Assembly (NCBI RefSeq): GCF_006345805.1
Contig: NW_021835751.1
Coordinates: 1 to 48,505 of the forward strand
Direction of reading: 5' to 3'
DNA: 48,505 nucleotides
From: Octopus sinensis
Taxonomy: Eukaryota
The notes below the pieces were generated by a model. The model saw only the letters and a list, made by a program, of their open reading frames with translations. It was not told the DNA's origin and made no database searches. The position numbers and the translations under genes are program-made. This document shows, piece by piece, positions 784-26,700 of the stretch (position 1 is its first letter; each line of letters begins with the position of its first letter).

Positions 784-860
784 TTTTAGTAAATTACTAA
801 TTATTTTTTTAAACTAACTTAAATAATGAAATATTTTTTTTATTTTTCGTGTCACTTCTA

Positions 861-2674: not shown

Positions 2675-2756
2675 TGGATGAACACAAATTTGAGCTCAAC
2701 ACAAGGATGAACACAAGTGATATTTATGAATATACCAACGTGTTAAATTGATAAAA

Positions 2757-3519
2757 ATGTTTCGAATGGTAGCTTTGAATTTTCTAATTTCGTCTTAGAA
2801 TGAGATAAGTAGGACAACTGTGGTGGCCCTATCCTATTTTGGAGGGGTTGTTCTTGCTGCAGATAGCAGAACAACCCAAAATCCGAATACTCCGAACGAA
2901 ACCTGTAATAAATTGTTGAACTAACAAATTAGATAACAACAGTAAAAAGAAAATATTTCGAATTACGATCAACTCGATTGTAGGGTTCTCGGGGAACATG
3001 TATGTTTGTGAAATATTGTTGGATGCATGTCGTTCTAAATATTTTTCTGATTAATTTGTTATTTAGATTCGCCCATCATGTCGAATCATGGAATTTAGCA
3101 ATGTTCATTAAAGGAATTTTTGCAAACTTCCAATTCTATTGTCGGTATATTTTATTTTTTTTATATTTTTAGGGCGTGGTTCTTGTATGCATTTATAACG
3201 GTAGAATCTACACACGTAGGATTGATTCCTTTACATTTGTAGACAAATTAAATTTCCCGACGACAATGGGATCTGGACAAATCTTCGCATTGGAGAGGAT
3301 ATTCAGACAGTATTTTTGTATAATTATTGGCAGTTACCCCAGAGGATTTATAACGCAAAGTGAGGCGATTAAAGTAGCCCACGATGCAATAAATTATGCT
3401 GCGCAAAAGGACCGATTCATGGGAGGATTTTCCCAAAGTATATTTTAATAAATAATATCTTAGTTTACACAATATCTTCATCTGGGATTAGTTTAGTGGG
3501 GGTAACCCGACTAAACTAA
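2757..3519 (+). pseudogene. Divergent proteasome beta-type (Ntn-hydrolase) gene, paralog A; near-intact, 6 micro-introns, 2 lesions
   Basis: Manual splicing (introns 2769-2798, 2905-2932, 3039-3066, 3145-3172, 3310-3333, 3438-3463) gives MFRMNEISR-TTVVALSYFGGVVLAADSRTT..KKIF..VGFSG..MGSGQIFAL..SEAIKVAHDAINYAAQKDRFMGGFSQIYTISSSG. Lesions: intron 3 begins AT, and there is a 1-nt frame mismatch at the intron 4 acceptor. Confidence 0.8.
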
Positions 3520-3529
3520 TTGAAAACAA

Positions 3530-3700
3530 AAGATTTTTCAAACAATTCTGCGGGATTTTCGGGAGATGTGAAGCTAATACACGAATTAATGTATCATCGA
3601 TATAAAATACACCCAGTGTTATTTACATCTGAAGTACATTAAAAAATATGAGAGACAAATCAATCAAGGTTGTGTGCTTCTTCGACAACAAGCATTTTTA
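3530..3700 (+). pseudogene. Proteasome beta-like paralog B, fragment
   Basis: NSAGFSGDVKLIHEL followed by gtatcatcgatataaaata. Nucleotide similarity to 26221-26345 (paralog C). Confidence 0.55.
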
Positions 3701-5049
3701 GTGATTTTCGTGGATCACGTTATAGCCAGAAAGTAGAGACGCCAAAAAAAGACAGATCAAAGACTTAATTTTTCTGGATGTCTGCTATTGATTGATTTTA
3801 GTTTTATTTGATTCTTTTTTGATTCCTCGTTATTTTTAATAAATTTCTTGTTAATAGATAAATCAGAATAAAAATAGAGTAAAAAAATTCAAATAGATAT
3901 AAAAAAATCATTATAAAAATGTCAAAATAATAAAAGATTGACTTTTAAGGAATAAAATCAAAAAAATGATGAAAATGATAAAATTTCAAATTCTGTAATC
4001 AGGAAATGAAAGTTCATAAAGATTTATTCCTTACAAATCAAATTAAATAAGAATGTAGAAAAGTACACATAAAATACCAACAAACTAAGTCAACTACATG
4101 TATCAACGTGTTAATATTTAATAGGCTTATCTTTAAAAATAGGTTAACCATTTGTGTAATGATTTTAATTTTAATAAATATAAATTTTATTTACATTTTC
4201 GAGAAGCTTCTCCTACCAATATCAGTGAGAAATTGAATCACGGCCTAGCCGACGATTCCTGAGGTTTCTATAAACTTGGAACTCTCTCTGGATTGTCAAT
4301 TTTGTAAAGAACCATGCCTTTACCGACGACATGAGTATCAGATAAGTTTGACACTTTTTTAGTGAGGACAAAAGGAATGTGAATATTCTTCATGTCGATC
4401 AAGTTACTGTTTACTGAAATGTGCGATGAGACACCTGATTTGGCATTGAAAATTGACTTGATGTCCCCTTGCTAAATTCATTTGGGTCTTTCGTTGTTTC
4501 TGCGTTGAATCATTTAACACAAGCCGGGAAATGTAGCCAAGAAGCAGTCCAAGAATATTCCTCCTCCAAAGTGGGAGTGAGTGGGTGAAGTTGGCAGAGA
4601 GGAGTCTCTTCTAGACTCGATATTGAATCCTTCTCCAAACTAGGTCCCTATGCCAGGCGTGATCACAGCCGAACAGCGATTGGATTGGGATAGGCGTAAG
4701 CTTGCTGATAGGCAGAAAAGGAATAGTCATTATGTGAGATAACCGAGTTTATTGATAGGAAATGTATGAAGTTAATTTGATGGAGCAATGCGACCTGTTT
4801 TTATTGATGGAAAAAGAACTTATCGACTAAAGAGTGAACATCGAGAGCTGCAAGCTTTTTGTGAATTATTTGTATGCTACGCCTTCTATTAGCTTGAGAG
4901 CTAGCTCTTGTCTTTTCCTGACACGAGTAGGACTAGGCCTTTTTATTACCGAATCTTGAGAAGAGCGTGCTTTCCAAATCGCAAAGATTTTTTTTCGACG
5001 AAACTTTGAGAGGAAAAGGCAAATTTCTTACCACTTTTTTGACTCAAAA

Positions 5050-5500
5050 ATGCTAAAGCTTCACGTTGCAATGAGAATCGGGGCCGAGCTTTCGCCCACG
5101 CAAGTCGGTGTTGGTGTACGTGGCGGCTGTGAAGGAGCTGTCCATGCCACCAGGGGTTTTTTCTACATGGGCCAACGTTTTACTACTGATTTCATCGTGG
5201 TGAAGCTGGATATCACCAACGCTTTCAACAACATAGGCCGCGATGCCATTTTGGAAACATGCTCTCGAAGAGCACCGGAAATAATTCATCTTGTCTCGCT
5301 TGCGTACGGTTAGGAGAGCAGTCTTGTATATGGGAATGAGATCATCCGTTCGCAGACTGGCGTGCAACAGGGTGACCCGCTTGGGCCACTTCTCTTCGCG
5401 ATAACAATCGATGAGGCAGCTCGACTTGCTGTCTCTCCTTTCAATCTTTGGTATCTTGATAATGACACATTGGGTGGCCGTGCTGATCAAGTAATTTTGA
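5050..5500 (+). mobile_element. CRE-like reverse transcriptase fragment
   Basis: LSPTQVGVGVRGGCEGAVHA..KLDITNAFN..(stop)..GVQQGDPLGPLLF..LWYLDN. Confidence 0.8.
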
Positions 5501-6050
5501 CTTGGTCCCAAAAATGGCGAGCAATAGAGGGAAAACGTTGAAAAAGATTCGTATATTTAGCTGACTCCCGGAGAACAAGAAAACAATCATAAAATGTATT
5601 CACCTCTAAATTAATTTATAGACACGAAAGGGATTTCGAAAATTAGACATATTCAAGATTGCTTGTACGGAATTATGGCCCTCAGCACACATATTTTTAT
5701 CAAATTATGTTATTTTAGGTTAAATAATTCCTAAGATATGTCCAATTCCAGTCGCAAACACACACCGATACAGATGGCTTCGTCCTCCAAGAGCAGACCA
5801 TTAGACGCCAGTTGGAGAGCACTTAACTAATCCTCAGAATGAGGGTGACAGGCGCAGTTCAACAACACCAACTGCATCTGTCGGTCCACTAAATGAGAAT
5901 ACCTGATGACATCCCAACTGTATGGAAGGAATCTCGGAGAGGTCAAATCCGAGCGATCTCCATTCGTGAACAGCAGCTGGGTATTCCGATAGCTCGTAGA
6001 GTTAGAGATTTGTTACGGCATGTTACACAAATATTATACAAATTACTATA

Positions 6051-7575
6051 CAGTCCGACCCCGAATTGGGGCACCAAGTGCCCCAAAAAGCGGGGGTGCC
6101 CCAAAAACAGGGGTTTAATAAAAACAGAGATTTTTAAACATCAAAAATCAATTTTAGAAAAATAATCAGTTAATTTATCCCCAGTTTTCCTTTTACTTCT
6201 TACATTTTTCATAAAATTAAGTCGAAAATCGTAAAATTCTTTAAGCATTTCAGGAGATTTGTGAAAAATTTTCTTTTTTAACTGATCAAGAGAATCTTGC
6301 GTTTCTCTTAGACTTGTTTCCATGTTATCGTTTTTTAAACCTTCGTTATAAATATTATCGACGAATTCGTCATTTTCCCCATCCAATGTTTCGTTTACGG
6401 CATTGTTGATTAATTCTTCTGTAATGCTATCTTTAATTATTACGGAATCACGAATCTTTTCAACTTGATTCCAACAATTAAATATCAAGTTTTTCCCAGC
6501 TTTTAGAAATTAGCAGGATTACCTGACGAAGGTTTATTTTGTTTATCGACCGTTTGAATTCATCACCATCATCCTCAAAGCACAAAAACTGAATCAGATA
6601 ATTTGAGTAATATGCATTTTTAGATAATGAGTATGAAATTCCAAAATCTTTCACATTGAAATTTTTGAGACATCGAGGGTTTTTAAATTTTCCAACAATC
6701 AATGGCTCAAGTTTTTCTCCCATAGAATTGCAACAAAGAAGTACGGTGACTCTTTCTTTTCCCTGTTTAAAGCCAAAAGTATCGTCATTTATTCCGACAA
6801 ACGACTTTCTCGGTGTCCTTTTTATATAAAGCGCTGTTTCATCACAATTAAAGACATTTTCTCTTCCATATTCCGCAATTTTCTCGTCAAGGATTTAAAA
6901 AAACTCATTGATGTAAGTTAAGTCAGATGAATTTTTCTCTCCACAAATTGATTTGAATCTCAGTTCATGACGCTTTTTGAATCTGTCAAGCCAGCCGTTT
7001 GAAGCTTTGAAAGAATTAAATCCAATTTTTGAAGCCGTATATAAGGCGATTTTCTTTATGAAAGGACCTGATATTGAAACTTTATCTTCCCGTAGTTTCT
7101 GAAATATTTCAAAAACTTGATCATCAAATTTCGATTTCTCACAATAAGACATAGGATCTTCATCCGTGTTTACAGTTCCTTGTTCAAGAAAAGGCACAAT
7201 TGTTTTTTTTTATTCGTGAAATCATGCCTTTGCTAGTTTTATATTTTTAAATTATCTGTCTTTCAGATAATTTTTTCTTCAATATCAATTTAGCAATCTT
7301 TAATTTTGTTTCATAGCTTATAACCATTGACAACAAAAAAATGTAAATAAACGTGTAAATTTAAATTATGTATTTATTAATAAAATATAATTTTATTTAC
7401 TTATAATTTCATTCCCCACAATTTTATAGTGCCCCAAAATTTTCATATTTTTTATCGATTTTCCATTTTACTCTGCCAAAATGTTGGCCAGAAAAAAGTG
7501 CCCCAAAATGCGGGGGTGCCCTAAAATCCGAGAGTGCCCCACCCCTGGGGTCTGCCCCAATTCGGGGTCGGACTG
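6051..7575 (-). mobile_element. pogo/Tigger-type transposon, internally deleted
   Basis: Perfect 23-bp TIR CAGTCCGACCCCGAATTGGGGCA with TA on both flanks. CENP-B HTH FKASNGWLDRFKKRH (6895-7197) and KER.TVLLCCNS.GEKL..IVGK are present. The DDE_1 core is missing after SKNAY. Confidence 0.92.
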
Positions 7576-8346
7576 TATAATGCTCGATGTGATTAGAATT
7601 TTTTTTATTTCTATTTTAGATCTCAAATTCGCATAGTTAATTAAAGTCATTAATTTTGACTGTCCTTGTCGTCTAAAAAGAAATAGTATATGAGTACACT
7701 GGACGTCTTCAATAATGTTAACCTGTTGAATTCACATTGTTTGCTAAAGTTAAATAGACTGACAATATTAAATGTTATTTATTTTATTTTCTAAATGTTT
7801 TTTACTTATCGAATTAAGCATGTCACATTCTGTTATTGTGTTGTACGTTCCTGTTTTTTATTTTTATTTGATTATTTTTTGTCATTAATGTTTTATTTTT
7901 GATTTTTTATTTGCTTGAAGATTAATTGAATTGACTGCTGGTAAAATATCTTGGATAAAGTTTATTTTGCAAGCGAATTTGTTTTTATTTAATCAACTAA
8001 ATAATCTTCGTTAATATGGGTTTTTTGAATTAAATTTATTTTTATCTACATACTATTTTTATTTTTTGGTATTTTATTGTTTATTTTTATAGTTGTAGTT
8101 TATTGCAGTAAAATATGGATACTTGTAATCTTGAGAATGAAATTTTTTATTATTAACTGATATTTTTTGAAGAGAACAAATTAAAATGGATTAATTCTGT
8201 TGGACTTAGTAGAGACTGAGCATAGTCAATGTCAGTACACAAATCTGGTCTTTAAGTTTTTGTAAAAAACAGATTACCAGAGATTATTTGGACGCACTGC
8301 ATGCTTTAACGTTTTCGCTTGGTTATCGAACTTAATTGAACTCAAT

Positions 8347-8822
8347 TCAGATAAAATATATTTGCTTGAATATGCATGGTGCCATAGAGAAATTTCCATC
8401 CATATACCATGTTTTAGAATTTGCCAATAACGCTAAATTACTATTGGTACTAAATATTAAAATTCTATCGTTTCTTCTATGATTATCATAAATTAAAAAG
8501 TTTTCTGAATCTGGACCAAGAGTTAAAGTTAAAAATAATGGAATATCTTCGAGATCTAGAATATTTTTTGGAATAGGTAGAGACAAGCGTTGATTCCTTA
8601 TTGTTCGCTTGAAAGAATCTGCAGAAGGGAGAATAATTTTGGATGCTGTATCACATTGAGAAACAACATTTGAACAGATTTGTAAGGGATTCTCTTGGCT
8701 CTTTTTTACAAGAAGTTTTGCTTTGTTGCACAACTTCGTCACTTTTATTTGAGTTTCGTCTAATTCCTGATTGTGAGAAATTCCTTCTTTAGGAAACTCA
8801 AAGTTATTATCTGTTTTTATTA
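8347..8822 (-). mobile_element. MULE (Mutator-like) transposase fragment
   Basis: RTIRNQR..P..FLIYD..RILIFST..L..SKTWYMDGNF.MAP..FKQIY. No TIRs found. Confidence 0.75.
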
Positions 8823-8825
8823 AAT

Positions 8826-10071
8826 CACTTTATAGCCTGCATTGAGGATGTTTTGTATTGTGGAGGCCATTGATTTGGGGATATCTTCATATAGTTTCCG
8901 CTCGGCAAGAACACAGTAATCACAAAATGTTAAATTTCCTGCGTTAAATCGACGAGAATTGTTGCCTATAAAATCAATATAATTTTGATAGGGAACTTCC
9001 TAAACTTTAAATTATTTAACTAAAACCACGTCGAGTATATAATTATAATAGTCAGTAAGACCAGTTAGTTCATAAAATAGGTCAAGTATTTCATCAAAAT
9101 ACTTCGTTTATTTAATAAAAGAAACCTCACTGCTTCGATAAAAATTTTCAGCTTCAATGTTCTGACGTGCCAAAAAATTTAAATCGTCAAATTTTCCAAT
9201 TTGATTATCAAAAATAAGTCCAATATTATATAGATACGTTCCATAGTCAAACATCTTTTTTATAGCTCAATTAACATACATTATACGGATCACAAAGACC
9301 ATCTCCAATTGCCATTCCAACTAAATTAATTGGCGTTGGATTGTTCCGGCTATATTGATCTATTGCAGAAACCATTGCAGGAATATATTTTCCGGCATAA
9401 GATTCTCCAGTAATGTAAAGGGGGTTAATCCTCAATTCTGGAAAAAGCAGATAAAATTGTTGCATGAAACTAACTCGTGTCAGTTTGATAAGATTACATT
9501 GATAAATAATAACCAACTTGTTCTTCGTTTGTAAGATAGCACTCTGTATCTGAAAAACTAAATCCAGATCCGACCTAGAAGTAACTAATTAAAATATACA
9601 GGATTGTCGATGTAAATAACGCTAAACTCTTTTGTCCACAAAATCTCTCTTAATTTTACTGCATAATTAATTAAAAATAAATAACATTCGTTGTCTGAAT
9701 TAAAAAAGTATGGACCATTTTCAACAAAAGCAGCATAAATCGAAGAAGTTCCGGGTCCACCCTGCAACCAAACTAGAATAGGTGCTGATATGTTTCCGTT
9801 CTTTTGTGATCATAAAAATAATTAAACCTCGGCTGGAAAATACCAGAAATATGTATTTCTTTCACATTCATTGCTTACTCTGAAAAAACCAGCGTAGAGT
9901 TCAGCATTTCCTATTATAGGTTCAACTCTGCTCAATTCCCTAGCCAATTCTCCTTGTCCATTATTTAAGTAGTCAGTAAGAATTAAAGGTAGGAACTCTT
10001 GAAATTTGAGGAGAATTTATGTAGTTACATCCAATGTAAAATATGTTTAAAATGATGAACAAAATTTTCAT
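8826..10071 (-). pseudogene. CPVL: Serine carboxypeptidase S10, CPVL-like; 3'-truncated
   Basis: Spliced across about 7 introns of 24-30 nt: PLILTDYL..RELSRV..YAGFF..FWYFPAE..WLQGGPG.SS..ENGP..IYIDNPVGSGFSF..ITGESYAGKYIPA..IGDGLCDP..ELTG..NAGNLTF..GYKV, collinear with animal CPVL. It stops before the catalytic Asp/His region. The signal-peptide-like N-terminus is out of frame. Confidence 0.85.
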
Positions 10072-10415
10072 TTTCTAATCTTTAAAAATGTTTAATTTAA
10101 TTTAATTTTAATTTATTGAACCAGAAAACCACCGTCATAGCCAAAAGAAAGAAGAATTCAGGTGATCCCAGCCTCCCTCAGCAGTTCGCGCAGCCTCTCC
10201 CGATGTTCCGCCGTTGTCCCGACGCATTTTCGGTACGGACGGGGATTTTCAGGACGAACCTCTCTGTTGTTCCAGACTTTTGGGATAATCTCTTTATCGG
10301 AGAAAGTATTCAGCAGGTTGCCGCTTTCACCCGAATTTTGTCGATTTTTGATCGATTGTTTGCACTTAAGTTTGTTCCCCAGATTCCGCACGCATAGCCG
10401 ATCGTAGGTTCAAAG

Positions 10416-12630
10416 CAGGGTTGTTAGATTTAAATCATTTGATTTTAATCAACAATAAAAATCAATGATTTAAATCATTAAAAAAAATCAAAAAAATCAA
10501 AAAAATCATTTAAATTTTTTTAAATGTCTGGAAGAAAGCGTGATTCTTTGTGGGCTTATTTTGATAAACGTATTATTCCTGGAAAGACCGGAAGCCGTGC
10601 CAGATGTCGTAATTGTGGGAAGGACATACAAGGTCTTGTATCTCGGATGAGGCAGCATCATTTATTATGTCGAAGTAATATTGATATCCCTGAAAATATG
10701 CCGAGACCTGAAAGCGAATTTCCTCCAAGCGAATTTCCTCGTATTATTCCTGGAAAGACCGGAAGCCGTGCCAGATGTCGTAATTGTGGGAAGGACATAC
10801 AAGGTCTTGTATCTCGGATGAGGCAGCATCATTTATTATGTCGAAGTAATATTGATATCCCTGAAAATATGCCGAGACCTGAAAGCGAATTTCCTCCAAG
10901 GATGAAGGACCATTCATTAATCAATTTCGTAACTACGACGACTTCATCTAAGAAAGATTTGATGGATCTGCAACTCGCTAGATACATATTTTCTACAAAC
11001 ACTCCGTTTGCTGCTGTAGAACATCCCGAATTTGTCAAATTCGTCCAAATGCTTCTTCCTGGGTATCGTTTACCCTCTCGTCATCAAATTGGTGGTACAT
11101 TACTTGATCATGTGTACGACCAAATACATGAAGACTGTCGACAAAGACTCCAGGACAAAACAGTGTCTATGATGTTGGACGGGTGGAGCAACATTCATAA
11201 TGAACCCGTTATTTGTGTCTCGGTTGTGACATCAGATGGGGAAAATTATCTCATTGACACTGTGGACACTTCTGGATATAGCCACACTGCGGAATATCTT
11301 CAATCTGTTGCTTTAGCCTCCGCACAATTGGCTGAACAACGGTTTGGATGTAAAATCGGCAGTCTTGTAACGGATAATGCTGCCAACATGACTAAAATGA
11401 GACGGATAATGATGGAAGATGGCAATGAAATAATTACTTATGGTTGCTCGGCACATTATCTCAACCTTCTTGTGAAGGATGTCGAGGTAGCGGACGTTAA
11501 AGGAACTATTGTAACAATCAATAAATATTTCCGAAACGTCCATCTTCCAGCTGCATGGTACAAATCTAATGGAGGAAAAAAACTCGTTCTTCCGATTGAT
11601 GTACGGTGGAACACTTTATCAGACTGTTTTCAATCTTATCTGGATAATTGGTCTATTATTTTGAGAACTTGTGAGGAACACAGAACGGATATTGATACAG
11701 AGATTTTTTCCAAGGTCCAAAATATTTCCCTAAAACGACGCGTTGAAGAATATCTGATGCTTATTAAACCAATTGCTGTCGCTTTAGATAAAATTCAGAA
11801 TGATTCTACCACGATTAGTCATGCTGTAGAAATTTGGAAAGAACTTGAACAGACATATATTGACAATGGATGTACGAATATTTTAGGAAAAGTGAGAATT
11901 CGAGCAAAACAAGCATTAACACCTTTCCACTTACTTGCGAATTTGATCGACCCGACATGTAGTGGGAAATCTCTTTCAAATGTTGAGATTGACATTGCAT
12001 TGAGTTATTGTGCTCAAAATTATGAATATGCACTTCCGACTCTGATTAATTTCAGAGCAAAAGCTGATCCATTTAAACAATACATGTTTGCTCCGATTTA
12101 TTGAGTAAAGTATCACCTATAGCTTGGTGGGAGTCGAATTCATACCAGTTACCTTCACAAGTAATTTCACTATGCAAAAAAATTCTTGGAGCAGTTGCTT
12201 CGACAGGTGGAATAGAAAGAATCTTTTCAACATTCGGATTTCTACATTCAAATGTACGCAATAGGCTGGGGATCGAAAAAGCAGCCAAACTTGTTTCCAT
12301 TTACAAGCTTTTAAATAAATAAAAACGATTTCCATTGTTTTTGTTTTTTATTTTAGTTCGCTTTGAAATATTTTTTTATTTATTAACCCGAAGACCACAA
12401 AGAAAGAAAGCGTAATGCAAACTAGTTAAGTGATCCCGGTGGACATAAGGAACTACGATAGATCGTTCTGCGTGGCCGTTTTTCAGTGTTTATGTACAAA
12501 GAGAGAGGTTCTCTGATAAGCCAGGTGGAAAGGGTCGTTTTGAAATAAAGATCATTTAATTCAAAAAAATCTGATTTAAATCAAAAAAATCGTGATTAAA
12601 TCAAAAAAATCATGATTTTTAACAACCCTG
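10416..12630 (+). mobile_element. hAT transposon, full length, one frameshift
   Basis: TIR CAGGGTTGTTA, 8-bp TSD GTTCAAAG (10408-10415 / 12631-12638) and AAATCA-rich subterminal repeats. ORFs 10524-12104 and 12101-12322 carry a BED finger, LDGWS, VTDNAAN, CSAH, RWN and GIERIFS. Confidence 0.95.
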
Positions 12631-12966
12631 GTTCAAAGTATTGATTATACATGTTGTTTAGGCCATATAGGCCTTTGCATTCTTTTGCGTTCTTCAGGAA
12701 GGCATTCAGGAAGTTAACCTTTCTTGCACCCGCCATAACTACATTTTCAACGTGGGTTGAAAAGGTTAGAAAGGTGTCGAATGTTACTCCAAGAATCTTC
12801 TGGGTTTTGCTCTGCGGTATAATTTCCCCGTCTAACTTCGCTTCAATTGAGACTTTCCCAAGCCTTCTGTTTTTCGTAAAAAGAGTCAAAATAGATTTTT
12901 CCGGACTTGCCTCCAGTTCGTTTTTATATAGCCATGAACTCAGATTGTTGAGGTTATCCTGTATTC

Positions 12967-15017
12967 CAGGGGTGGCCAACCTTTTTCACCGGCGAGCTAC
13001 TTTTCATTTTGCGATTTTTTGGAGATCGACTTATATATTTTAATATCAAAAATTTTATTTTACAATTAAAAATTAATGCGATTTTTGGCATTGTAATTCA
13101 CTTGCGATTATTTCAAATTCTGGCTCGTATAAGCTTTTGCTATTCTCATGCAATCCCCAAGATGGTCATCCGTTAAACGTGTCCTGTGTTGAGATTTTAT
13201 CATTTTCATACTTGAAAATAATGTTTCGGATAAATATGTGCTTCCAAAGCATGAAAGAATTCGTTGATACGAATCAATCAAAATTGGATATTTTTCCTGA
13301 GACATAAATTTCCACATGTTGACATTTGAATGTAATTTTAAAGTGATGTCATTTTTTAGATTTATAATTTCTATTTGACTTTTTCTTCGATCAACGTCAA
13401 ACATCTTGCTAAATTCTTCTGAAATATTTTCGATGTCTACATCCATGGACGGAGAAACAAAGAAACTGCATAATATAGTAATTTTCTTGAAATCGCTAAA
13501 TCTGTTATTAAACTCGTTCATTATTTTTTCTAGTACCATAGCAAATTCATTGACATAATGATTTTTATTCACAAGTTGTTTTGTGAATTCATCTTCAATG
13601 TTAGGAAAATGGGTAAAATTTTCTTTTCTGATTTGAGATATCCATAATTCCAACTTCATTATGAAAGCATTTATTGAACTGATCATATCGATAATATATC
13701 TATTCTTTCCCTGTAATTCTAAATTGAGTTCATTCAGTTTGCTGGTAATATCGGTTAAAAATGCCAAGTTTATTAGCCAATCAGGATTTTCAAGAAAATG
13801 CCAATTCTTGTTGTTTTCTTTAGAAAATTCTTTAATGTATGATAATAATTCTCTGAAACGACTGAGAATTAATCCCTTGCTTAACCATCTTATGTCACAA
13901 TGTAAAGGTAGATCGCCATAGATTGCATCGACTTGTTCTAGAAAAAGTCGAAATAATCTTCTTTGTAGGGGCTTGGCTCGGATGGAATTAATAATTTTAA
14001 CTGTTGTCTCCATAACATAGTTGAAATTTAACATTTTCCCACATAATGCATGTTGGTGAATGATGCAATGATATGATAAAAATTTCGGAAAATGTTCATC
14101 TTTCCGACAAAATGCAATAAATCCATTTTGATTCCCAATCATTGCAGGGGCTCCATCTGTTGTTATGGATACAAGTTTCTTCATTAACGGTAATAATTCG
14201 AATGATAACAAAAACGTTTTGAAAGAATTATAAATATTTTCACCAGTTGTTCTTTCTTTCATAGGTATAATAGCAAATAACTCTTCCTTGACAGTTAGAT
14301 CATGGAAGATTAAACGGGAAAATACACATAGTTGGGCGATATCAATAGCATCGTTTGATTCGTCAAACTGTAGAGAAAAACACGAACATGCGTAAAGATC
14401 CTTTTTTAACTGCGAAAGAACATTTTCAGAAATGCTTTCAGCCCTTCTGACAATTGACTGTTTTGAGAGCTGAAGCTCTTTGATGCAATTTGAAATTTCC
14501 TGTTTATTTTTCATACCATCAAATAGTGAATCGGCAGCTTCCAAAAAACAAGATTTTAAAATTTCCCCATCAGTGAAAGGTTTTTTGTGTTTTACGAGGA
14601 GACGAGTCACTCGCAATGATGCAATTGTTGCAGATCTGGACGAATTAATAAACTTTTTCAAAATTGTATGTTGTGAAAAAAAAGATTTTTTTAATTGTTC
14701 AACTTTCTCTTCCCGTAATAAGGAATTTAAAGGAAAGTGTTTGTTGAACTCGGGATGTAAAGAATTAAAATGCCGACAAAGATTTCCCCTTTTTGGTAAT
14801 GAAATGATTTTATTGCATAGCATACATGTGCATTTTTCCATGTGCATTGTAAAAATATAGTCTTTTTCCAAATTGGCATTAAATTTATATGATTTGGACT
14901 TTTTGTTACACCTCATAACAAGACACGTGAAAAATACTTACTTTAATATTGATAAATATTTTTTTTATAATAATTTAAATACAAAAAAAATAATTAGCAA
15001 TTTATATATCGAGCGAT
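12967..15017 (-). mobile_element. hAT Buster/SPIN-type transposon lacking one terminus
   Basis: Single TIR CAGGGGTGGCCAACC at 12967, flanked by CTGTATTC (nnnTAnnn, the Buster signature). The other TIR and most of the TSD are deleted at about 15017. Confidence 0.88.
13108..14916 (-). CDS. Intact 602-aa hAT Buster-type (GTF2IRD2/EPM2AIP1-like) transposase
   Basis: Uninterrupted ORF with C..C..H..H finger, FSLQFDES, ITTDGAPAM, HCIIH, RWLS and STYLSETLFS. Confidence 0.92.
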   Translation of the reverse strand: MRCNKKSKSYKFNANLEKDYIFTMHMEKCTCMLCNKIISLPKRGNLCRHFNSLHPEFNKHFPLNSLLREEKVEQLKKSFFSQHTILKKFINSSRSATIASLRVTRLLVKHKKPFTDGEILKSCFLEAADSLFDGMKNKQEISNCIKELQLSKQSIVRRAESISENVLSQLKKDLYACSCFSLQFDESNDAIDIAQLCVFSRLIFHDLTVKEELFAIIPMKERTTGENIYNSFKTFLLSFELLPLMKKLVSITTDGAPAMIGNQNGFIAFCRKDEHFPKFLSYHCIIHQHALCGKMLNFNYVMETTVKIINSIRAKPLQRRLFRLFLEQVDAIYGDLPLHCDIRWLSKGLILSRFRELLSYIKEFSKENNKNWHFLENPDWLINLAFLTDITSKLNELNLELQGKNRYIIDMISSINAFIMKLELWISQIRKENFTHFPNIEDEFTKQLVNKNHYVNEFAMVLEKIMNEFNNRFSDFKKITILCSFFVSPSMDVDIENISEEFSKMFDVDRRKSQIEIINLKNDITLKLHSNVNMWKFMSQEKYPILIDSYQRILSCFGSTYLSETLFSSMKMIKSQHRTRLTDDHLGDCMRIAKAYTSQNLK

Positions 15018-15936: not shown

Positions 15937-16112
15937 GTTTAGACCGTCTGATATAAACTTCATTAAAGCATTTAGGTGTGTGACAGTTGATCGCCCCTCT
16001 TTGAATCCATGTTGGAAACTGACTTCTGGGAGGAGGGGGCGAATCAAAGTCATCAAAAATGTTTAAAAGTTTATTTATCTTTTATACTGTTGGTTTGACA
16101 TTTAATTATATT

Positions 16113-16914: not shown

Positions 16915-17289
16915 ATTATATTTTTATTAAATATTATAGTTAATACAATAAAATTGAAAAATTTATCGCGAGAATAATTTTCCATTATTCCTTGTTCGGT
17001 GTTTTTGACAAAGTCCAAGAATATGTCTAAATAACCAACATCTCGATAAGGTCACTTTCATGCTGATTAATCTAGAATTACATAGCGTATATAGTTTTCC
17101 TTGAAATTTGGGGGTTCAAACTTTGGGATGACTCTTCGGCTGCTTACCACCCGGCTTACAATCTTCGTAAATCCGCCAACTAAAGGACAATATGTGCTAC
17201 CTGTGCTGATCTGAAAAGAATTCTGTTGAAAATCCTTTTGGGAAACAGAGAAAAAAATCGGCATTAATACACGATTTTATCTCTATGAG

Positions 17290-18934
17290 AGCCATCTGCA
17301 GAGCAATCCTGCCTACATTGATAACACAATTACAACCAGCCCAAAATGGGTCGGCACACCGAGAGGTTGTGAACATTCACCGAAAAGAACGAGAACAATC
17401 CTTTCGTAATCGTCAAAATTGACATTAAAAATGCCTTCAGCTTGATACAATTCTGGAGGACTGCTTCACATACTCATAGCTCATATGAGAAACCATCCAG
17501 CCTGGTGCACGGCTAATATCACATCTCATCGTGTTCTGGAGTCCAACAAGGAGACCCACCGGGGCCTGCCTTGTTCAGCCTGGGAATTGTCCGTGTCACA
17601 AGATATTGTTCCACTCCTTTGAGGGTATTTTGATGATTGCACCATGGACGGCCATCCGAAGGATGTACTAGATTGCCTAAAAAGTCAGATAGCCCAATTG
17701 GAATCCCTATGCCTAACCATAAACACCAATAAGTGTGAAATTGTCAATTTTGGATTTCCGCAGCCTGAATGGAACCTGATTCTTGATACATTCAGAGAGA
17801 TCATCCCTAAAGCCACAGAAACCAAATCAGAATAACTAGAAATACTTGGATGCCCTCTCACTGATGCTGGAATCAGTAACACTCTAATAACAAATGAACA
17901 TCAACTAAAAACGACATTTAGACGTCTGGAGATGCTAGACGCACATAACTCCCTATTCCTGCTAAGAAACGCCTTGTCAGCACAGAAACTGAATTACGTT
18001 CTTCGGGGCGCACCCTGCTACCTGGAAATGCAACCTGGAAAATCGACGACCAAAGGTGGGACCAAGTCAGCCTACCTGTTAACCTGGGCGGACTGGGAAT
18101 CCCTTCACCGAAAGATCTAGCTTGCCCCGCATATCTATCCTCTTTAGATTCCAGCCGACTGCTGATCAGGATAATTCTCCAAATCCAAACCGAATCATCT
18201 GAAATCACAGACATGGAGCAGAAAGACCGTTACAGGACCATCTGCGAGGATAAATATGAGAGGCTTCAAAACCAATCAAACCAACACAGACGTGCCTGTC
18301 TAGTGACTGAAAGATGCGAATCGAGTGGAGCTTGGATCAACACACTCCCCGTTGATAGACGCATCAGCACCAGACTTGGACTGGAGATTTGCCGGACTCA
18401 CAAATGCCGGTGTGGGGCCACCGTCGATTGTTATGGACACCATGCTCTCTTTTGTCGAAGAAGTGCAGGACGATTCCCAAGACACAAGGCGATCAACGAA
18501 ATTGTTAAGCGAGCCCTGGAGTGTGCAGGATACCCCGCCGTACTTGAACCGGTTGGTCTTGACAGAGGAGATGGAAAACGTCCTGATGGGATCACAATTT
18601 TCCCATTTGAAGAGGGGAAGCCTCTAGTTTGGGATTGCCGGGAGCGCAGTGAACAGACTGCACGCCGCGGAAAAAACGATGAGGGCGAAGGAGAGAAAAT
18701 ATGAAGCGCTGCGAGATCGATTCGTGTTCTGTCCGATTGTGGTCGAGACAACTGGAGGGATAAGTAGGAAATCGCTTCGCTTCCTAAAGAAGCTTGGACG
18801 CTTAGCCACATTAAAAAGCCACGACACACGTGAGACCCGGTGGCTTCTCCAATTGATCTCCGTTGCTATCGTAAGAGGCAACGCAACGTCAATTATGTTG
18901 ACGGGGTCCACTTCTGATGGATGGCTTTGTTAAC
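17290..18934 (+). mobile_element. CRE-like non-LTR retrotransposon, decayed (RT + RLE)
   Basis: KIDIKNAFS, GVQQGDP.GP.LF, LGCP and LLRNALS..KLNY.LR, followed by a 3' part identical to 1-783. 5' limit approximate. Confidence 0.85.
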
Positions 18935-19011
18935 TTTTAGTAAATTACTAATTATTTTTTTAAACTAACTTAAATAATGAAATATTTTTTTTATTTTTCG
19001 TGTCACTTCTA

Positions 19012-20828
19012 TACCATCTTCAGTTTAATTTTGATAATTTTTATATCAATTTTGACACTCTGCATTAACTTTGACAATGCAATAAGTATTATTGACAATG
19101 CGATATTCATTTTTGACATTTTTAGATTAATTTTGACAAAATTGGCCGTTTGTACACCCTTCATACATTAGCGCATTTTGTAATAATAGTGCACGAAATT
19201 CCGTCAGGGTTTCATTTCCTACTACATGAACATCGTTATGAGGATTGTTGTGATTGAATAAATATGTCTTTACCAGCCTTAAGAATCAAAAAACAGCCTT
19301 TTTTAATCGTGATTAAAAAATGCTGGACATTTGAGGTGCGGTTATGCGACAACTCGCCTACTTAAAATAAAAAGTAATTCGTTTTTTATATCAATAAGTA
19401 TAGACAAATATTCACTAAAGATAATGCTTACGCTTGGGCCAGGACATCTGTCAGCCCCACCCATGCCGGTGCGGGTCCACGATCTTTCCGAACGGTTTGC
19501 ACGCCCTCTCGTGCAAGAAGAGTGCTGGCAGAATTCCTCGCCACACTCACCTCAATGACGTCGTGAAAAGAGCTCTAGAGTCGGCAGGTTTCCCCTCCAC
19601 TCTAGAGCCAGTCGGTCTCTGCCGGAGTGATGGAAAGCGTCCTGACGGGATGACTACCTTCCTTTTCAAGGAAGGCAAGTCCCTGATTTGGGACGCAACT
19701 TGTGTTGACTCGTTCTCCGCGTCGGTGTTACTCAAGTCCATCACTAACCCGGGTTCCGCCAGTGCTCAGGCTGAGGAGGCTAAGAGGTCGAAGTATGGAA
19801 ATATTTCGGACTCTTACGAGTTTGTCCCCCTCGCCTTCGAAACATCTGGAATTGTCGGCAGGTCTGCGACTCGCCTTCTTGCCGACATTGCCAGGAGAAT
19901 CGCCAAGAAGACCAACGACCGGAGGGAGACGAGCTGGCTCTTCCAGCGAATCTCGGTCGCAGTGCTTCGCGGAAACAGCCACTCGATACGCAGTGCGGCG
20001 ACTTTGAGCTGACCTCCAGGCTCTTTATTAATTCGTGTATAACTTATTCCCCATTTTACCTGTTTTTACACTTTGTGTAAAAAAAAAATTTACACATATC
20101 AAGAAAACAAGAGAGGTCGAAAAAAGGGCAGCGATGTAATACACGTGCAGCTTCATCTAAAGAGCTAACATTCATGTTATCGGTTGCATCGGTACAAAAG
20201 GGGTAATACACTTTGAAACACGAAGAGGATCCTTTAATAAACAAACTGCGTATGATTGGATTAAAGCATGCTTTAAAAAAGCATATGAAGTTTATCTAAG
20301 TCCAGTAGTTTTAATAATTGACAATGCTCCATGTCTACAGACATTGAAAAAATACTTAAAGAAAATAAATTCACAAAAAACAAAATACTTCTACTGGAAC
20401 CTTACAGTCCAATGTTAAATCCAATCGAACAAATATGGTCTAAAATGAAAACTTTTGTAAAAAATGGCTGAAAATCTTGGGAATATCTTAGATGGAAATG
20501 AACTTGACTTGTCAAAAAAAGAATTTCGGAAACAGAGATTGGAGGATTTAATTAAACAATCTATGGAAGAAGTTACTCCAAAGATTTGTGCTAAGTTAAT
20601 AGCCAGAATCCAAGGACTATTGCCTTCTTTATTAAATTACAAAGACGTAACATTTTAATTTTTTCGTTTGATATAAATGAGTCATGATTTTTTTTCAAAT
20701 ATTTTAAAATTAACTTGGAAATCCAATATTGAATTTGGAAAACCCCACTTTGAACTTGGAAATCCCATATTGAATTTGGAAAATCACACTTTGAACTTGG
20801 AAATTCCCATATTGAACTTGGAAAGGTA
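19012..20828 (+). mobile_element. IS630/Tc1-like transposon (duplicate of 861-2674) containing the CRE-like insert at 19435-20088
   Basis: Same termini and motifs as 861-2674. ORF 19434-20012 is identical to 1283-1861. Confidence 0.7.
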
Positions 20829-20910
20829 TGGATGAACACAAATTTGAGCTCAACACAAGGATGAACACAAGTGATATTTATGAATATACCAACGTGTTAA
20901 ATTGATAAAA

Positions 20911-21976
20911 ATGTTTCGAATGGTAGCTTTGAATTTTCTAATTTCGTCTTAGAATGAGATAAGTAGGACAACTGTGGTGGCCCTATCCTATTTTGGAGGG
21001 GTTGTTCTTGCTGCAGATAGCAGAACAACCCAAATCCGAATACTCCGAACGAAACCTGTAATAAATTGTTGAACTAACAAATTAGATAACAACAGTAAAA
21101 AGAAAATATTTCGAATTACGATCAACTCGATTGTAGGGTTCTCGGGGAACATGTATGTTTGTGAAATATTGTTGGATGCATAATAATAATAATAGAGGCA
21201 CGTCCGCAAGATCGCAACTTAATGTGAATCTCGCACTGGCCAGCCACATAAGATCAAGATAGAAAGAGAGAACATGTTATTAGGAACTAACTAATCCAAC
21301 GAACGAATCCAAACGAGCTGTCCCCCGCATCTATTTTTCTTCGTGCTGTGGCTGATGTAGACATCCGGTTTTCCGCAGTGAAATCACTGATGACGGCGTC
21401 ACTCGTCAATCCTGGGTGCATGTAATGCATGGAACCTTCAGCCGGAATGATAGCAGTGAGATTCGAACCAGAGCTTCGCTAAACTGCCAAATTCTTCAGC
21501 ACTGCACCATTGTTGGATGCATGTCGTTCTAAATATTTTTCTGATTAATTTGTTATTTAGATTCGCCCATCATGTCGAACCATGGAATTTAGCAATGTTC
21601 ATTAAAGGAATTTTTGCAAACTTCCAATTCTATTGTCGGTATATTTTTTTTTATATTTTTAGGGCGTGGTTCTTGTATGCATTTATAACGGTAGAATCTA
21701 CACACTTAGGATTGATTCCTTTACATTTGTAGACAAATTAAATTTCCCGGAGAGGATATTCAGACAGTATTTTTGTATAATTATTGGCAGTTACCCCAGA
21801 GGATTTATAACGCAAAGTGAGGCGATTAAAGTAGCCCACGATGCAATAAATTATGCTGCGCAAAAGGACCGATTCATGGGAGGATTTTCCCAAAGTATAT
21901 TTTAATAAATAATATCTTAGTTTACACAATATCTTCATCTGGGATTAGTTTAGTGGGGGTAACCCGACTAAACTAA
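20911..21976 (+). pseudogene. Proteasome beta-like paralog A' (duplicate), disrupted
   Basis: Same exons as 2757-3519, plus a SINE in exon 3 and an in-frame 33-nt deletion removing TTMGSGQIFAL (the GSG motif). Confidence 0.8.
21182..21508 (-). mobile_element. tRNA-derived SINE, family 1
   Basis: Absent from copy 1. 14-bp TSD ATTGTTGGATGCAT (21168-21181 / 21509-21522). Minus strand shows an A-box-like GGTGCAGTG, a B-box GGTTCGAATC (about 21460-21469) and an (ATT)n tail. Confidence 0.85.
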
Positions 21977-22499
21977 TTGAAAACAAAAGATTTTTCAAAC
22001 AATTCTGCGGGATTTTCGGGAGATGTGAAGCTAATACACGAATTAATGGTTAACCATTTGTGTAATGATTTTAATTTTAATAAATATTAATTTTATTTAT
22101 ATTTTCGAGAAGCTTCTCCTTTTTTTTAACACTCCTACCAATGTCAGTGAGAAATTGAATCACGGCCTAGCCGACGATTCCTGAGGTCTCTATAAACTTG
22201 GAACTCTCTCTGGATTGTCAATTTTGTAAAGAACCATGCCTTTACCGACGACCTGAGTATCAGATAAGTTTGACACCTTTTTAGTGAAGACAAAAGGAAT
22301 GTGAATATTCTTCATGTCGATCAAGTTATCGTTTACTGAAATTTGCTATGAGACACCTGATTTGGCATTAGAAATTGACTTGATGTTCCCTTGCTAAATT
22401 CATTTGGGTCTTTCGTTTTTTCTGCGTTGAATCATTTATTGGATTGAGAAAAACTAAAAATCAATGTTTTAAAAAGAGAGAAGAAATATTTTTTTCAAC

Positions 22500-25400
22500 T
22501 GTGTGGTTATGGAGGTTTGTTTTCAACTTGTTATTAGTTTAAGTGTGGAGTCTGTTATGCAACGTGCTACTATCTCGATGTGTGCTCTACCTGGACAACA
22601 ACAAACTAACAATATTATTAATAATAATATACCTAGAGCAGGATGGACAACCGCATCGGAGAGACAGACGTCCGATGGCAAGAACATCGTCTTTGCCATT
22701 GCAGAAGGGATCGAGTGCACGACCCGGGAGGACTGGGTTAAATCCGCCCTTTCCCAGGTGTTGGGAAGAGCTTCCAGGATGCCCAGAAATGGGTGGCCTA
22801 CCCTGCTTCAGTGTTTCAATCGACGCTTTAGCTCGAACCTATCGTTAGATGCACTGAAGAAGCTGGCCAAGACCCCTCCTCCTGGCTCGCGGGGGAGGAC
22901 TGCCGCTGCGGTTACGCCGTCAGGATGCCCCCGTGTTCTGAACAACACGAGCACCAGAGTAGTGAGTTATCGCTACTCTTGCAGGTTAAGGAGATATTTA
23001 GTAGGCATATCTCTGCGAATCGTGTTGTCCCCCTTGCGGACCGCAGAGTGACCCGAAAGATACCTCGGTGGCAACTCAGAAGTGACGTGATGGGTTGCAT
23101 CAATCGTGCCATAGCTTACGCGATCGTGCGTGAGCCTCCGGAGACAATGGACGAGAGATCTCTTTATTTGTACTCGGCACAGACAACCTATGATGAAATC
23201 ACTCAGAGGCCTGCCCCAAAGAGTAGATGGAGAGAAAACATTGCCGCAAAAGTAGCCGCAAGGAAAGCCGAGCTGGAAGCGCTGACTGGGCACATTTTGA
23301 ATGTGAGCAATGGGGTCAAGGGCAAGACTCCCCCCTTGGTGCGTACTTTACTTCGTCGGGAACGAGCTGCCAAATGGGACCTCAACGAGTTGAGGCGTGT
23401 CCGGGCAGAGAGGGAGGAGCTGATTCTCGTTTATCAGAAGAAGCTCTCAACTCATGAGTCTCGATGTCAGCGCAGGCGGGAGAACAACTGTTTGAATTTA
23501 ATCGCAGGTCGTTCTATCGTCGGTTGCACGGAGAGACGAAGGAGGGTACCCAGCAAAAGGCCGAAATGCTTGACACATGGGGGAGTATGTGGAAAGCACG
23601 TCCTCGCAAGGGTGTGTCGTTTCCGTTTTGTGGACCCGATGCTCCCTTGATGACCGAGTCTTGTGGTGTCCCTGACATCCGCAAGAAGTTCGATGAAGCA
23701 GTAACCCGTCTCTCTGACTGGAAGACACCTGGGGTCGATAAAGTGTATAATTTCTTTATTAAAAATTGCAAACCTATCCATGATTGCATGTGTCGAGCAA
23801 TCGAACAGTTTACACTAGACCCTGGCTCGATTCCAGAGTGGTTATGTACTGGGGTCACTTATTTGATCCCTAAAGTAGATAACCCTTCCGCTCCGACAGA
23901 TTATCGTCCGATAACCTGTATGCCCAACCTGTACAAGTTGATGACTAAGGTGGTGGCTACTGAGGTCAGAAATTTCGTGGAGGTGAATGGGATTCTGTCC
24001 GAGAACCAGTTAGGTACTCGGCGGGATTGCCAGGGAGCTAAGGAGCAGGCACTGATCAAAAATGCCTCGCGAGAGCCCACGGAAACTCACTAGTGTCAAT
24101 GTGGGTGGATGTGAAGAAGGCATATGACTCGGTTGATCATGCCTACCTCGTTGAGTGTCTGCGAAGGCTTAAGTTGCCAATGTGGTTTATCAAATTTGTT
24201 GCAACTGTGATGGACAGGTGGAACGTCCATCTAAATTACAACAAATGCGATATAGGCGAGGTGAAACTAGAGAGGGGCATATTACGGGCGACAGCATGTC
24301 TCCGCTGCTGTTCGTCCTCTGCCTAGAACCGCTGAGTAGAGTCCTCACTGCCCAATTCGAACAAATGTCGATCGAACATGAAGGAGGGTGTTTTAGCACC
24401 AACCATCTCATGTTCATAGACGACATTAAGCTGTTCGCTCGGTCTTCAGAGATCCTTCACTCAATGGGTAAAGTCCTGAAAGGTTTCATGAAGGCCGTGG
24501 GGTTGGAGCTCAACTACAACAAGTCGGCGACTAACACCCCTGTGTGTGGTGACCTAGTCAAAGTCTTGGAGGAACACCAAGGATATAAGTATCTTGGTGT
24601 GGTTGAGAGTCCAGCCTCATTAATCACACCCGAAACGAGAAAGTGTGTAGTGGAGGGTGTGCGTAGTAGAGCGGCAATGTTATGTAAGACTCGGCTTAAT
24701 GCACGGAACTTATTTCATGCCTTGAACGAGTATGCCATCTCATTGCTAAACTACTACGTTGGCCTGATCGAATTCGAGCCGAGTGAGTACGATGAAATGG
24801 ACCTTATTGTCCGAAGAGTACTCCGAGAGAATCATGTCCACGTGTTGGCAAGCAATAAGGAGAGATTGTACTTGTCTCGCGGGCAGCTAGGACGTGGACT
24901 GAGTAACATCGTACACTTAAGTGAGCGAATTCTTACTAAGATGCACGACACCTTGTGGAGTGGGTCGAGTGTATCCCAAAGGAAGGCTGCCATCCTTGCT
25001 GCTGAAAAAGCGCGTGGTACACACCTAGGGACCATAAAAGGCTATGTGTCGGCTAAGTATGGTCTAGGTGCTACCAAGTTAATGTGAAGGAGTTGATCAA
25101 ACTTCAAAGGAGTCTTTAATTAAAAAGATCAACTTAAAAGTCCTTCACAAGACTCTCTTTAGCAGCCTGGACAACCCGCACATTGACGTATCGTCGTCAT
25201 CTACGTGGCTGAAATATGGGAATAACTCTCCCCGATCAGAAGGGTTGTTCTCATATTTGCAGGATAGAAACTTTTTTAATGGGTCAACGGAAACAGTGTA
25301 ACCACTGTAAGAGTAAGGCAATGACCGTTGACCATTTAGCCACGAAGTGCGGGAGTGCTTTACCATGATTACACATGGAGGCATAACGAGGTGGTGAGGT

Positions 25401-26054
25401 CCCTCCATCTTTTGCTCTGCAATAAGTACGGCTTGAGGCGGTCCAGAAAGTTGCGAAACCCGAGTCAATATCGGTGTGTGAGAACTCGCGGGTGTGCATT
25501 AAGGTGGATACCCCCATACGCACCTCGATTGTTGTCCAGCACAACAGACCCGACATTGTGGTCCACGATAAGGTCACCGGGGAGATTGTTATCGTGGAGG
25601 TGGGCATCACGTGCCTAGACCGTTTGCAGATAGTGGAAGTGGAGAAAAGGAGGAAGTATGACCTCCTTGCAAACGAGCTAGGACTGATGCACCAGTGCAA
25701 AGTCCATGTCATCCGTGTGTGATGACATGGGATGGACTGGTCACCAAATACCACAAGCGGTACTTAAGACAGTTGGATGTAGATAAGTCTCTACAGGCTT
25801 ATATACAGTCAACTGTTCTTAAGAGGACTCTGGAGAGTGTCTCGTTTGATGCTCGCCGATCCAGCCCTTTCCTGACGTTTAGTCAGCAAGAGGCGCTGGA
25901 CTGCACCTTCTCGAAGGTCTACAGTGCCAGAGAAGAGGAGGAAGAAGGGGAGGAGGTGCGTGGAGTGCCGCCTTCTGCTCACTTCGAAGGCTCTGGACTT
26001 AGTTAGTAAAATTACTTAGTTAATTAGTTTCTTTCTTAATAAAAAAAAAAAAAA
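22500..26054 (+). mobile_element. Near full-length R4/Dong-like RLE non-LTR retrotransposon with multiple frameshifts
   Basis: KTPGVD..YRPITCMPNLYK..VDVKKAYDS..GDSMSPLLF..MFIDD..YKYLG, CCHC finger (C..C..TVDH..C..RHN), RPDIV..IVEVG..K.RKYD and an A14 tail at 26041-26054. 5' limit approximate. Confidence 0.9.
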
Positions 26055-26700
26055 GTTTGGAACAACAATACTTTAAGTCAAATATTGCGGAGTAGTCTTG
26101 CTTGCTGCAGGCTCTAAAAGAACAACGAAATTTAAACATAGAAGTAATTAATGTACTAATTTTTTTAATCCTGTAGATAAAGATGGAGTCGATAAAATCG
26201 AAGCTTTTTCGAAAAATATAATAGCAGGATTTTCGGGAAATGTCAAACTTAGTACACGGATTTGCGAGGAATTAAGGTATCATCGATATAAAATAGCTTT
26301 AGAACTATGCGCTCACCCAGTACCACTGATATCCGGAATACATTTAAAAAATGTAAAAAATCAATCGCGTTTGTGTATTTAATTTGTTGTTATATTTTAG
26401 AAAATCCTTTTTGTGGAGACAGTGTAGGGAGTTGTCATCCGTGTTGATATATTCCTGTTATAATTCAGTCAAAGAAGATGTTTTTTCTATCGGATCTGTC
26501 ACAAAAATATGTTTACCAGTACAAATCATTGTATATATTTTTAATAATCAATATTTTAGATTTTGCAAGAATAAAAATCGCTCTTTCAGGAATGCGCTAT
26601 CTCTGGCACACAATTGTCTGGAGTTCGCCTCTTGGAAGAGCACAAGTACTGGAAAGAATTTAAATAGTAAGAAAGTATTTTTTAACTATTTAGTCTGGTC
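26055..26700 (+). pseudogene. Proteasome beta-like paralog C
   Basis: FGTTIL*VKYCGVVLLAAGSKRTT..(intron)..DKIEAFSKNIIAGFSGNV..SIGSV..ALSLAHNCLEFA. Intron positions match paralog A. Stop at 26074-26076, and the 5' end abuts the retrotransposon poly(A). Confidence 0.7.

Follow-up and report, generated by a model that had tools for sequence, protein, structure and literature searches.

Probable relics of a diverged beta1-like proteasome paralog pair in a contig filed under Octopus sinensis

The DNA studied here, which we call the window, is the whole 48,505-nucleotide (nt) stretch of contig NW_021835751.1 (assembly GCF_006345805.1), filed under Octopus sinensis. It carries loci that resemble the beta subunits of the 20S proteasome, all on the plus strand: a best-preserved gene, A (2757-3519); a fragment directly behind it, B (3520-3700); duplicates of these, A' (20911-21976) and B' (21977-22048); and a second beta-like lineage, C (26055-26710). 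Local tblastn searches with two beta-like proteins as queries found exactly these five loci in the window and no further copy. A first-pass annotation, made from the letters of the DNA, had taken them for a hidden local family of threonine hydrolases produced by lineage-specific expansion. All five loci that it named are present, including the fragment behind A, the duplicates at 20911-22048 and the third locus at 26055-26710, and duplication followed by decay fits its idea of an expansion, but the evidence does not favor a working family in the window. Four of the loci (A', B, B' and C) have plainly been disabled, and the state of A is in doubt. None of the five yields an unbroken reading frame of about 190-200 mature residues, the canonical length, when normal splice sites are used. 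We consider it probable, from the sequence, that the five loci are relics of a diverged, lineage-specific pair of beta1-like paralogs, and so a small gene graveyard rather than a hidden working protease family.

Structure and homology of locus A

Locus A contains five unambiguous introns of 24-30 nt with GTA..YAG boundaries, at 2769-2798 (30 nt), 2905-2932 (28 nt), 3145-3172 (28 nt), 3310-3333 (24 nt) and 3438-3463 (26 nt), each of which removes stops or restores the frame between beta-like segments. The exons are 2757-2768, 2799-2904, 2933-~3028, an uncertain center, 3173-3309, 3334-3437 and 3464-3519, the last ending in a TAA stop. The spliced protein matches the Pfam family PF00227 at 45.2 bits (E 1.1e-11; cut-off 22.4) and also matches 20S beta chains in the PDB; over alternative readings of the center, the PF00227 score ranges from 44.6 to 49.3 bits. 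The beta-like gene proposed in the first-pass annotation is therefore borne out here, and both A and C score above the cut-off.

Much of the active site can be recognized in A. A leader of nine residues, MFRMNEISR, is followed by TTVVALSYFGGVVLAAD, in which we read Thr1-Thr2, Asp17 at exact spacing, and Arg at position -1. The motif KKKI supplies the equivalent of Lys33 and is preceded by a 4-residue insertion. GFSGN carries Gly47, MGSGQ corresponds to Ser129-Gly130, and QKDRFMGG contains Asp166, with Met at 169 in place of Ser. Of the catalytic set of an active subunit, A thus has Thr1, Asp17, a Lys33 equivalent, Gly47, Ser129 and Asp166, but has Arg in place of Gly(-1) and Met in place of Ser169. 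The earlier list of residues (Thr1, Asp17, a KKI motif, SG, GSG, KD, Arg at -1, Met at 169 and a 9-residue propeptide) was correct in every item. Gly at -1 is typical for beta subunit autolysis, and Arg at -1 and Met at 169 are unfavorable for autolysis and active-site integrity.

Searches for relatives of A returned little. The C-terminal 90-residue stretch (3173-3442) has no real relative among 1.84 billion representative proteins, with one spurious repeat match only. A word-indexed homology search with spliced A gave no match at E<=1e-3; the database searched has no identical entry even for an intact 602-residue hAT open reading frame (ORF) in the window, so this result has little bearing on expression. 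A look through the literature for proteasome genes in dicyemids or myxozoans, the animals to which the tiny introns point (see below), found nothing relevant.

The center of locus A

The condition of A turns on its center (3000-3172), where a segment like helix H1 lies in frame 1 and a segment like helix H2 lies in frame 2. We enumerated all joins of exon 3 (ending in GFSGN) to exon 5 (beginning GVVLVCIYNG) with intron lengths up to 150 nt. Loose splice rules yield thousands of ORF-preserving paths and are uninformative, so a constrained test with a shuffle control was used instead. With GTA donors, none of these joins preserves the ORF. The sole joins with introns of 18-45 nt need two GTC donors (at 3029 or 3032, and at 3080), an AAG acceptor, and a 13-nt micro-exon (3067-3079). 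The first-pass annotation had described an open frame of approximately 200 residues interrupted by introns of 24-30 nt. Five such introns exist, but its path across the center requires introns of 38 and 34 nt with GTC donors, and the product has 184 residues, with about 20 residues of helices H1 and H2 missing. On that path only ~25 residues separate Gly47 from the next strand, compared with ~49 in canonical subunits, and Pfam aligns the protein in two pieces. When the 170-nt center was shuffled, 38% of shuffles permitted a GT-AG rescue, compared with 3% under the GTA rule, so the existence of this path is not evidence that the gene is intact. Moreover, the GTC donors are off consensus, because the 5' splice signal in Dicyema japonicum, as in myxobolids, is reduced to 'GTa' (PMC13644364).

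A frame-corrected reading, in which the H1-like segment (MYVCEILLDACRSKYF.., frame 1) is joined conceptually to the H2-like segment (..FAHHVESWNLAMFIKGIFANFQFYCR, frame 2), places ~45-54 residues between Gly47 and the next strand and so restores canonical spacing. PF00227 then aligns to it in a single stretch (positions 5-189 of 189, 49.3 bits), and Leishmania beta1 can be aligned with it from end to end. As the DNA stands, frame 1 ends at a TAA (3052-3054), and frame 2 meets the donor at 3145 in phase 2 where exon 5 needs phase 0. Whichever consensus splicing model is used, this mismatch implies one or more frame-breaking lesions; the model that fits best has two, at the T5 run at 3042-3046 and at GG 3144-3145. 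A and A' are alike at both sites, so the lesions predate the duplication. On the grounds of splice-site consensus, length and alignment, A is most likely a recently inactivated pseudogene, and we infer with fair but not high confidence that it is dead.

A recent duplicate of A

The duplicates noted at first pass exist, but they belong to one segmental duplication whose second copy is disabled. Positions 1-3028 match 18152-21181 at 99.6% identity (blastn), and the match extends to 4516 in the first copy and 22438 in the second. Copy 1 (1-4516, plus strand) holds retroelement ORF fragments, a mariner fragment, a tandem repeat, A and B, and continues past the left edge of the window, so that the duplication spans at least 4.5 kb. 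Copy 2 (18152-22438, plus strand) carries A' and B'.

Only 2 substitutions separate A' from A across the gene. Even so, A' has lost 1 nt in exon 2 (equivalent to 2878), which shifts the frame; a short interspersed nuclear element (SINE) of 327 nt has inserted on the minus strand (21182-21508), right where exon 3 has its boundary; 4 nt are gone from an intron; and a deletion of 33 nt (equivalent to 3259-3291) has taken out TTMGSGQIFAL, including the GSG loop. The SINE is tRNA-derived, with a B box, GGTTCGAATC, at 21460-21469 and a TTA-repeat tail, and is flanked by a 14-nt target-site duplication, ATTGTTGGATGCAT, at 21168-21181 and 21509-21522. No other copy of the SINE was found in the window or in L001 or L002, the 45 kb of a related contig that we also searched, and tblastn with A and C against these 45 kb found no additional beta-like copy. 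Three disabling lesions set against two substitutions indicate that A' has not been under selection.

Other features travel with the duplication. A tandem repeat with a unit of 39-41 nt (AACTTGGAAATCCCATATTGAATTTGGAAAA.., 2.7 copies) occurs at 2560-2670 and 20712-20824, ending some 90 nt before the genes A and A' start, and a mariner DDE fragment (2009-2290) lies just upstream of the first array. Two related ORFs, 62-553 and 1283-1861, are duplicated at 18213-18704 and 19434-20012. They share a Cys/His-rich motif followed by ..RPD.. and are without a Pfam match; they may be retroelement C-terminal endonuclease-like domains.

Locus C and the C-like fragments

Locus C matches PF00227 with an E value of 8e-7 (27.7-29.3 bits, cut-off 22.4). 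It reads FGTTIL, an in-frame TAA six codons after Thr1 (26074-26076), and then VKYCGVVLLAAGSKRTT.., and it has no ATG. The GTT motif reported earlier for this paralog is indeed there, but it is followed by the stop, lacks a start, and goes with Gly rather than Asp at position 17. Elsewhere in the catalytic sites, GSG has become GSV and Asp166 is lost (the region reads WKSTSTG). Two introns are clear, at 26144-26176 (33 nt) and 26667-26693 (27 nt), and the sequence downstream of the TAA can be spliced into an open frame that runs to 26710, with more than one reading possible in its center. A ciliate-type genetic code, with TAA and TAG read as Gln, would open the TAA; we rejected it, because the standard code suits the transposon ORFs and the terminus of A, and because the broken frame in A would not be mended.

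The upstream neighbor of C is a long interspersed nuclear element (LINE) at 22440-26054 on the plus strand, its 5' boundary approximate, with reverse transcriptase ORFs at 23458-25084 (RVT_1 matches). The first codon preserved in C follows directly on the AATAAA signal and 14-nt poly(A) tail (26041-26054) of this element, so C lacks its 5' end. No target-site duplication of the LINE was found beside C, and the missing end is thus not locatable upstream.

A and C were described as very diverged from each other and from known beta subunits, and this is what we see. Their first 63 mature residues show 37% identity; beyond that point BLASTP detects no similarity, and a global alignment gives 28%. 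Both have a derived GFSGN motif where canonical subunits have G-x-AAD, together with Phe at position 45 (IVGFSGN in A, IAGFSGN in C). The two loci were also said to have introns in common. Position and phase do agree for the intron that follows the S3 loop (phase 1) and for the last intron (phase 1, splitting an Ile codon), but the intron after helix H1 is in phase 1 in A and phase 2 in C. Altogether, motif, residue and intron evidence indicates that A and C are related to each other.

Fragment B is a 5'-truncated C-like piece (..AGFSGDVKLIHELMYHRYKIHPV..) that begins directly behind the stop codon of A and contains two in-frame stops. It is ~78% identical in DNA to C 26190-26380 (51% amino-acid identity, E 1.6e-7, tblastn), so the three paralogs counted at first pass reduce to two lineages. 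B' is a copy of the start of B and breaks off where 546 nt present in copy 1 (3592-4137) have been deleted. In the coding part that B and C share, all four indels are multiples of three, and the differences by codon position number 9, 12 and 17. This pattern gives weak hints that the C lineage may once have had more than one frame-constrained copy.

Type of beta subunit

In NCBIfam, the match of A covers the whole of the archaeal (8e-11) and bacterial (3e-9) models of the 20S beta subunit, and no HslV model appears for A at E<=1. A joint profile of A and C has 49 matches in the PDB, and every one is a eukaryotic 20S beta chain. The top 17 are beta1/PSMB6 chains (Plasmodium, Leishmania, mammals; 36-28 bits), followed by beta2 at a margin of a few bits. 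These results bear directly on a suggestion of the first-pass annotation, that the genes might encode a stand-alone, self-assembling protease like HslV or Anbu. Only the short propeptide and small size speak for such a protein of bacterial type (HslV, Anbu or BPH), which we regard as extremely unlikely given the profile matches and the spliceosomal introns; in addition, no HslU-like ATPase or other AAA+ partner was seen among the window ORFs that were scanned.

A second possibility is that A is the ordinary PSMB6 (beta1) ortholog of a fast-evolving parasite and that the second copy is an assembly duplication. Arg45, in the S1 pocket, is typical of beta1. The top PDB matches are to this subunit, and dicyemids evolve fast (PMC6543705). 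However, although beta1 is the nearest type, conservation in A falls short of ortholog level: A scores about 34 bits against beta1 over 183 residues (~0.19 bits per residue), whereas a neighboring ATP13A1-like pseudogene scores 154 bits against its human counterpart over about 360 residues (~0.42 bits per residue). Position 45 is Phe rather than Arg, the central frame is broken, and a deeply different paralog, C, adjoins A together with fragments. The copies of the duplication differ by a SINE and by deletions, which are poorly explained as collapsed-haplotype artifacts. An ordinary PSMB6 is therefore improbable, and by their sequences A and C appear to be a strongly diverged offshoot nearest beta1, neither ordinary orthologs nor HslV-like.

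Relics or a working family

How might such a set of loci have arisen? The ancestors of A and C would each have been an N-terminal-threonine hydrolase subunit of ~200 residues with a short propeptide. Since both long kept open frames, with common intron positions, we infer that they were once under selection, and the length of their open exon frames in AT-rich DNA suggests that both were functional until fairly recently. C has since lost its 5' end beside the LINE and has a premature TAA and substitutions at catalytic sites; B and B' are truncated C-like fragments. In A the catalytic residues are kept, but the central H1/H2 region is out of frame under consensus splicing, and inactivation would have come before the duplication. 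A' was disabled soon after this very recent segmental duplication, by the frameshift, the SINE, and the deletion of the GSG loop.

Several observations weigh against the view that A is a relic. Its homologous exon frames are free of stops, with open stretches of 35-60 codons in DNA of 31% G+C, and it retains a start, a stop, five intact consensus introns, and the catalytic residues listed above. A gene in this state cannot have been long without selection. The scores of the spliced and frame-corrected readings differ little (45.2 versus 49.3 bits), and Pfam scores in general cannot separate alternative readings of the center, in A (44.6-49.3 bits) or in C (27.7-29.3 bits). The apparent frameshifts in A fall at short homopolymers (T5 and GG), where an assembly error may be responsible, and A could still be expressed through an off-consensus splice pattern.

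These points lend themselves to a different reading: A may be a functional, diverged beta-type subunit, spliced as in the first-pass annotation or obscured by small assembly indels, and A and C may belong to a dicyemid-specific family whose working members elsewhere serve as alternative or specialized proteasome subunits. The preserved residues of A, its clean boundaries and introns, and the existence of an ORF-preserving path are all consistent with this. So are the derived GFSGN motif and common intron positions, which set A and C apart as a subgroup of their own, the B/C indels in multiples of three, and the failure of the 90-residue search to find a close relative. However, two GTC donors, where the consensus is 'GTa', and a 13-nt micro-exon are required for the rescue path, which is found at chance level and drops ~20 residues of H1/H2. 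Neither Arg at -1 nor Met at 169 is favorable by what is established for 20S beta subunits. The duplicate A' decayed at once, and all other members in view are dead. We therefore see a functional A as possible but clearly less probable than a pseudogene.

The more far-reaching form of this idea concerns the rest of the genome. Here A and C would be local relics of a dicyemid-specific, extremely diverged beta1-derived family, marked by GFSGN, Phe45, the short propeptide and Arg at -1, with intact, expressed members elsewhere acting as alternative catalytic subunits or as a repurposed N-terminal nucleophile (Ntn) hydrolase. On the sequence features of A and C we rate this as unlikely, and we are equally doubtful that intact relatives of A or C exist elsewhere in the genome at all. 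The reading of the five loci as relics of a paralog pair remains the one that we prefer.

Source and setting of the DNA

Although filed as octopus, the window most likely consists of dicyemid DNA, as judged indirectly from its introns, composition and shared elements. Among animals, introns shorter than 30 nt have been reported only in myxobolid myxozoans and in Dicyema japonicum (PMC13644364). The D. japonicum that has been sequenced came from Octopus sinensis as its host, and the genome of this dicyemid has 36.7% G+C, 49% repeats, and many copies of LINE ORF2 (PMC6736024). The G+C content (~36%) and repeat load of the window agree with this description. A myxobolid origin was considered for the tiny introns and set aside once the link between Octopus and dicyemids emerged.

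The window could instead be octopus host DNA, or a chimeric contig with transferred dicyemid genes, in which case the beta-like genes would be parasite-derived inserts. In support, two proteins annotated as Octopus sinensis match the intact 602-residue hAT ORF (13108-14916, minus strand) at 97-98% identity. Both proteins are on one contig, VCDQ01009621.1 (GCA_006345805.1), which has several repeated stretches in common with the window, including a hAT segment of 1.0-1.6 kb at 99% DNA identity (L001 11725-12736; L002 12014-13652). However, this contig itself carries an IQUB gene compacted into about 1.7 kb with a 47-nt GTA..TAG intron, a structure that is not octopus-like and suggests dicyemid contamination. 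In addition, the G+C content, repeat load and LINE ORF2 copies fit D. japonicum (PMC6736024), and a search with the ATP13A1-like pseudogene brought up no octopus protein near-identical to it. We thus regard an octopus origin of the window as very unlikely, and VCDQ01009621.1 is probably dicyemid DNA too. For the shared hAT element, transposon sharing between host and parasite would be an alternative.

The beta-like loci lie in a setting that is itself a graveyard, with an ATP13A1-like pseudogene next door and transposable element ORFs throughout. Pfam scans and the ORF list show eukaryotic DNA in which transposable elements are dense across the window: LINE fragments encoding reverse transcriptase and endonuclease, two hAT/BED transposase ORFs, Tc1/mariner pieces, and a CCHC gag-like ORF. 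The window gave no match in Rfam or tRNA scans. The ATP13A1/P5A-ATPase-like pseudogene (27500-30900, plus strand; E 6e-44 to human ATP13A1 chains) is intronless, has in-frame TGA codons near 28422 and 28801 and a frameshift near 28525-28547, and carries the phosphorylation motif NKTGTLT, not DKTGTLT. Its G+C content is above that of its surroundings, and it is probably a processed retrocopy.

Some repeat structures deserve a brief record. A BED/hAT-like ORF (10524-12104, 526 residues) contains a perfect 171-nt tandem duplication (10569-10900, plus strand), so that the BED zinc-finger region occurs twice, in frame. A 41-nt tandem repeat forms two arrays (~5 copies each), at 42162-42382 and 43808-44038, inverted and 1.4 kb apart; they flank an ORF-bearing segment and resemble the termini of a foldback-type element. 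At 38730-38860 there is a degenerate interstitial run of telomeric repeats of the TTAGGG type.

Implications and comparison with known systems

If the loci are relics only, they record ordinary genome decay. They would still be of some use in the annotation of dicyemid assemblies, in which standard gene finders fail on the tiny introns and pseudogenes may pass for a gene family. A dicyemid is a parasite of roughly 30 cells with a reduced gene set, about 5,000 genes. If it is true that intact, expressed members exist elsewhere, such additional and radically diverged subunits of the catalytic type would represent an unusual specialization of the proteasome outside vertebrates and insects, in a parasite with so few genes. 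The octopus-filed contig that looks dicyemid-derived, with its 99%-identical hAT element, implies either that a public assembly of the host is contaminated or that host and parasite share transposons, and this perhaps has the more immediate practical use.

How do the window genes compare with known N-terminal-threonine hydrolases? In their present state, they add to the lineage-specific proteasome beta paralogs and their pseudogenes, as badly preserved members. HslV, Anbu and BPH belong, distantly, to the same Ntn-hydrolase superfamily and also use an N-terminal Thr nucleophile. The window genes differ from them in having a propeptide and spliceosomal introns, and stand nearest to eukaryotic 20S beta subunits. 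In HslV the Thr comes right after the initiator Met, whereas in A nine residues precede it.

The closest counterpart is beta1 (PSMB6, yeast Pre3), with which A shares the PF00227 signature, a Thr1 that follows a propeptide, Asp17, the Lys33 equivalent, Gly47, Ser129-Gly130 and Asp166. In contrast to beta1, A is only about 25-30% identical to that subunit, has Arg rather than Gly at -1, Phe rather than Arg at 45, and Met at 169, carries GFSGN in place of G-x-AAD, and has the 4-residue insertion before the Lys33 equivalent. It also has a broken central frame and several decayed copies in a transposon-rich region. In their mode of origin, the window genes recall the vertebrate PSMB8, PSMB9, PSMB10 and PSMB11 and the testis-specific Pros-beta duplicates of Drosophila, which are lineage-specific duplicates of catalytic-type beta genes that later diverged. 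Those genes are intact and expressed, and their parent type is clear, whereas the copies in the window are far more diverged and are disabled or, in the case of A, doubtful.

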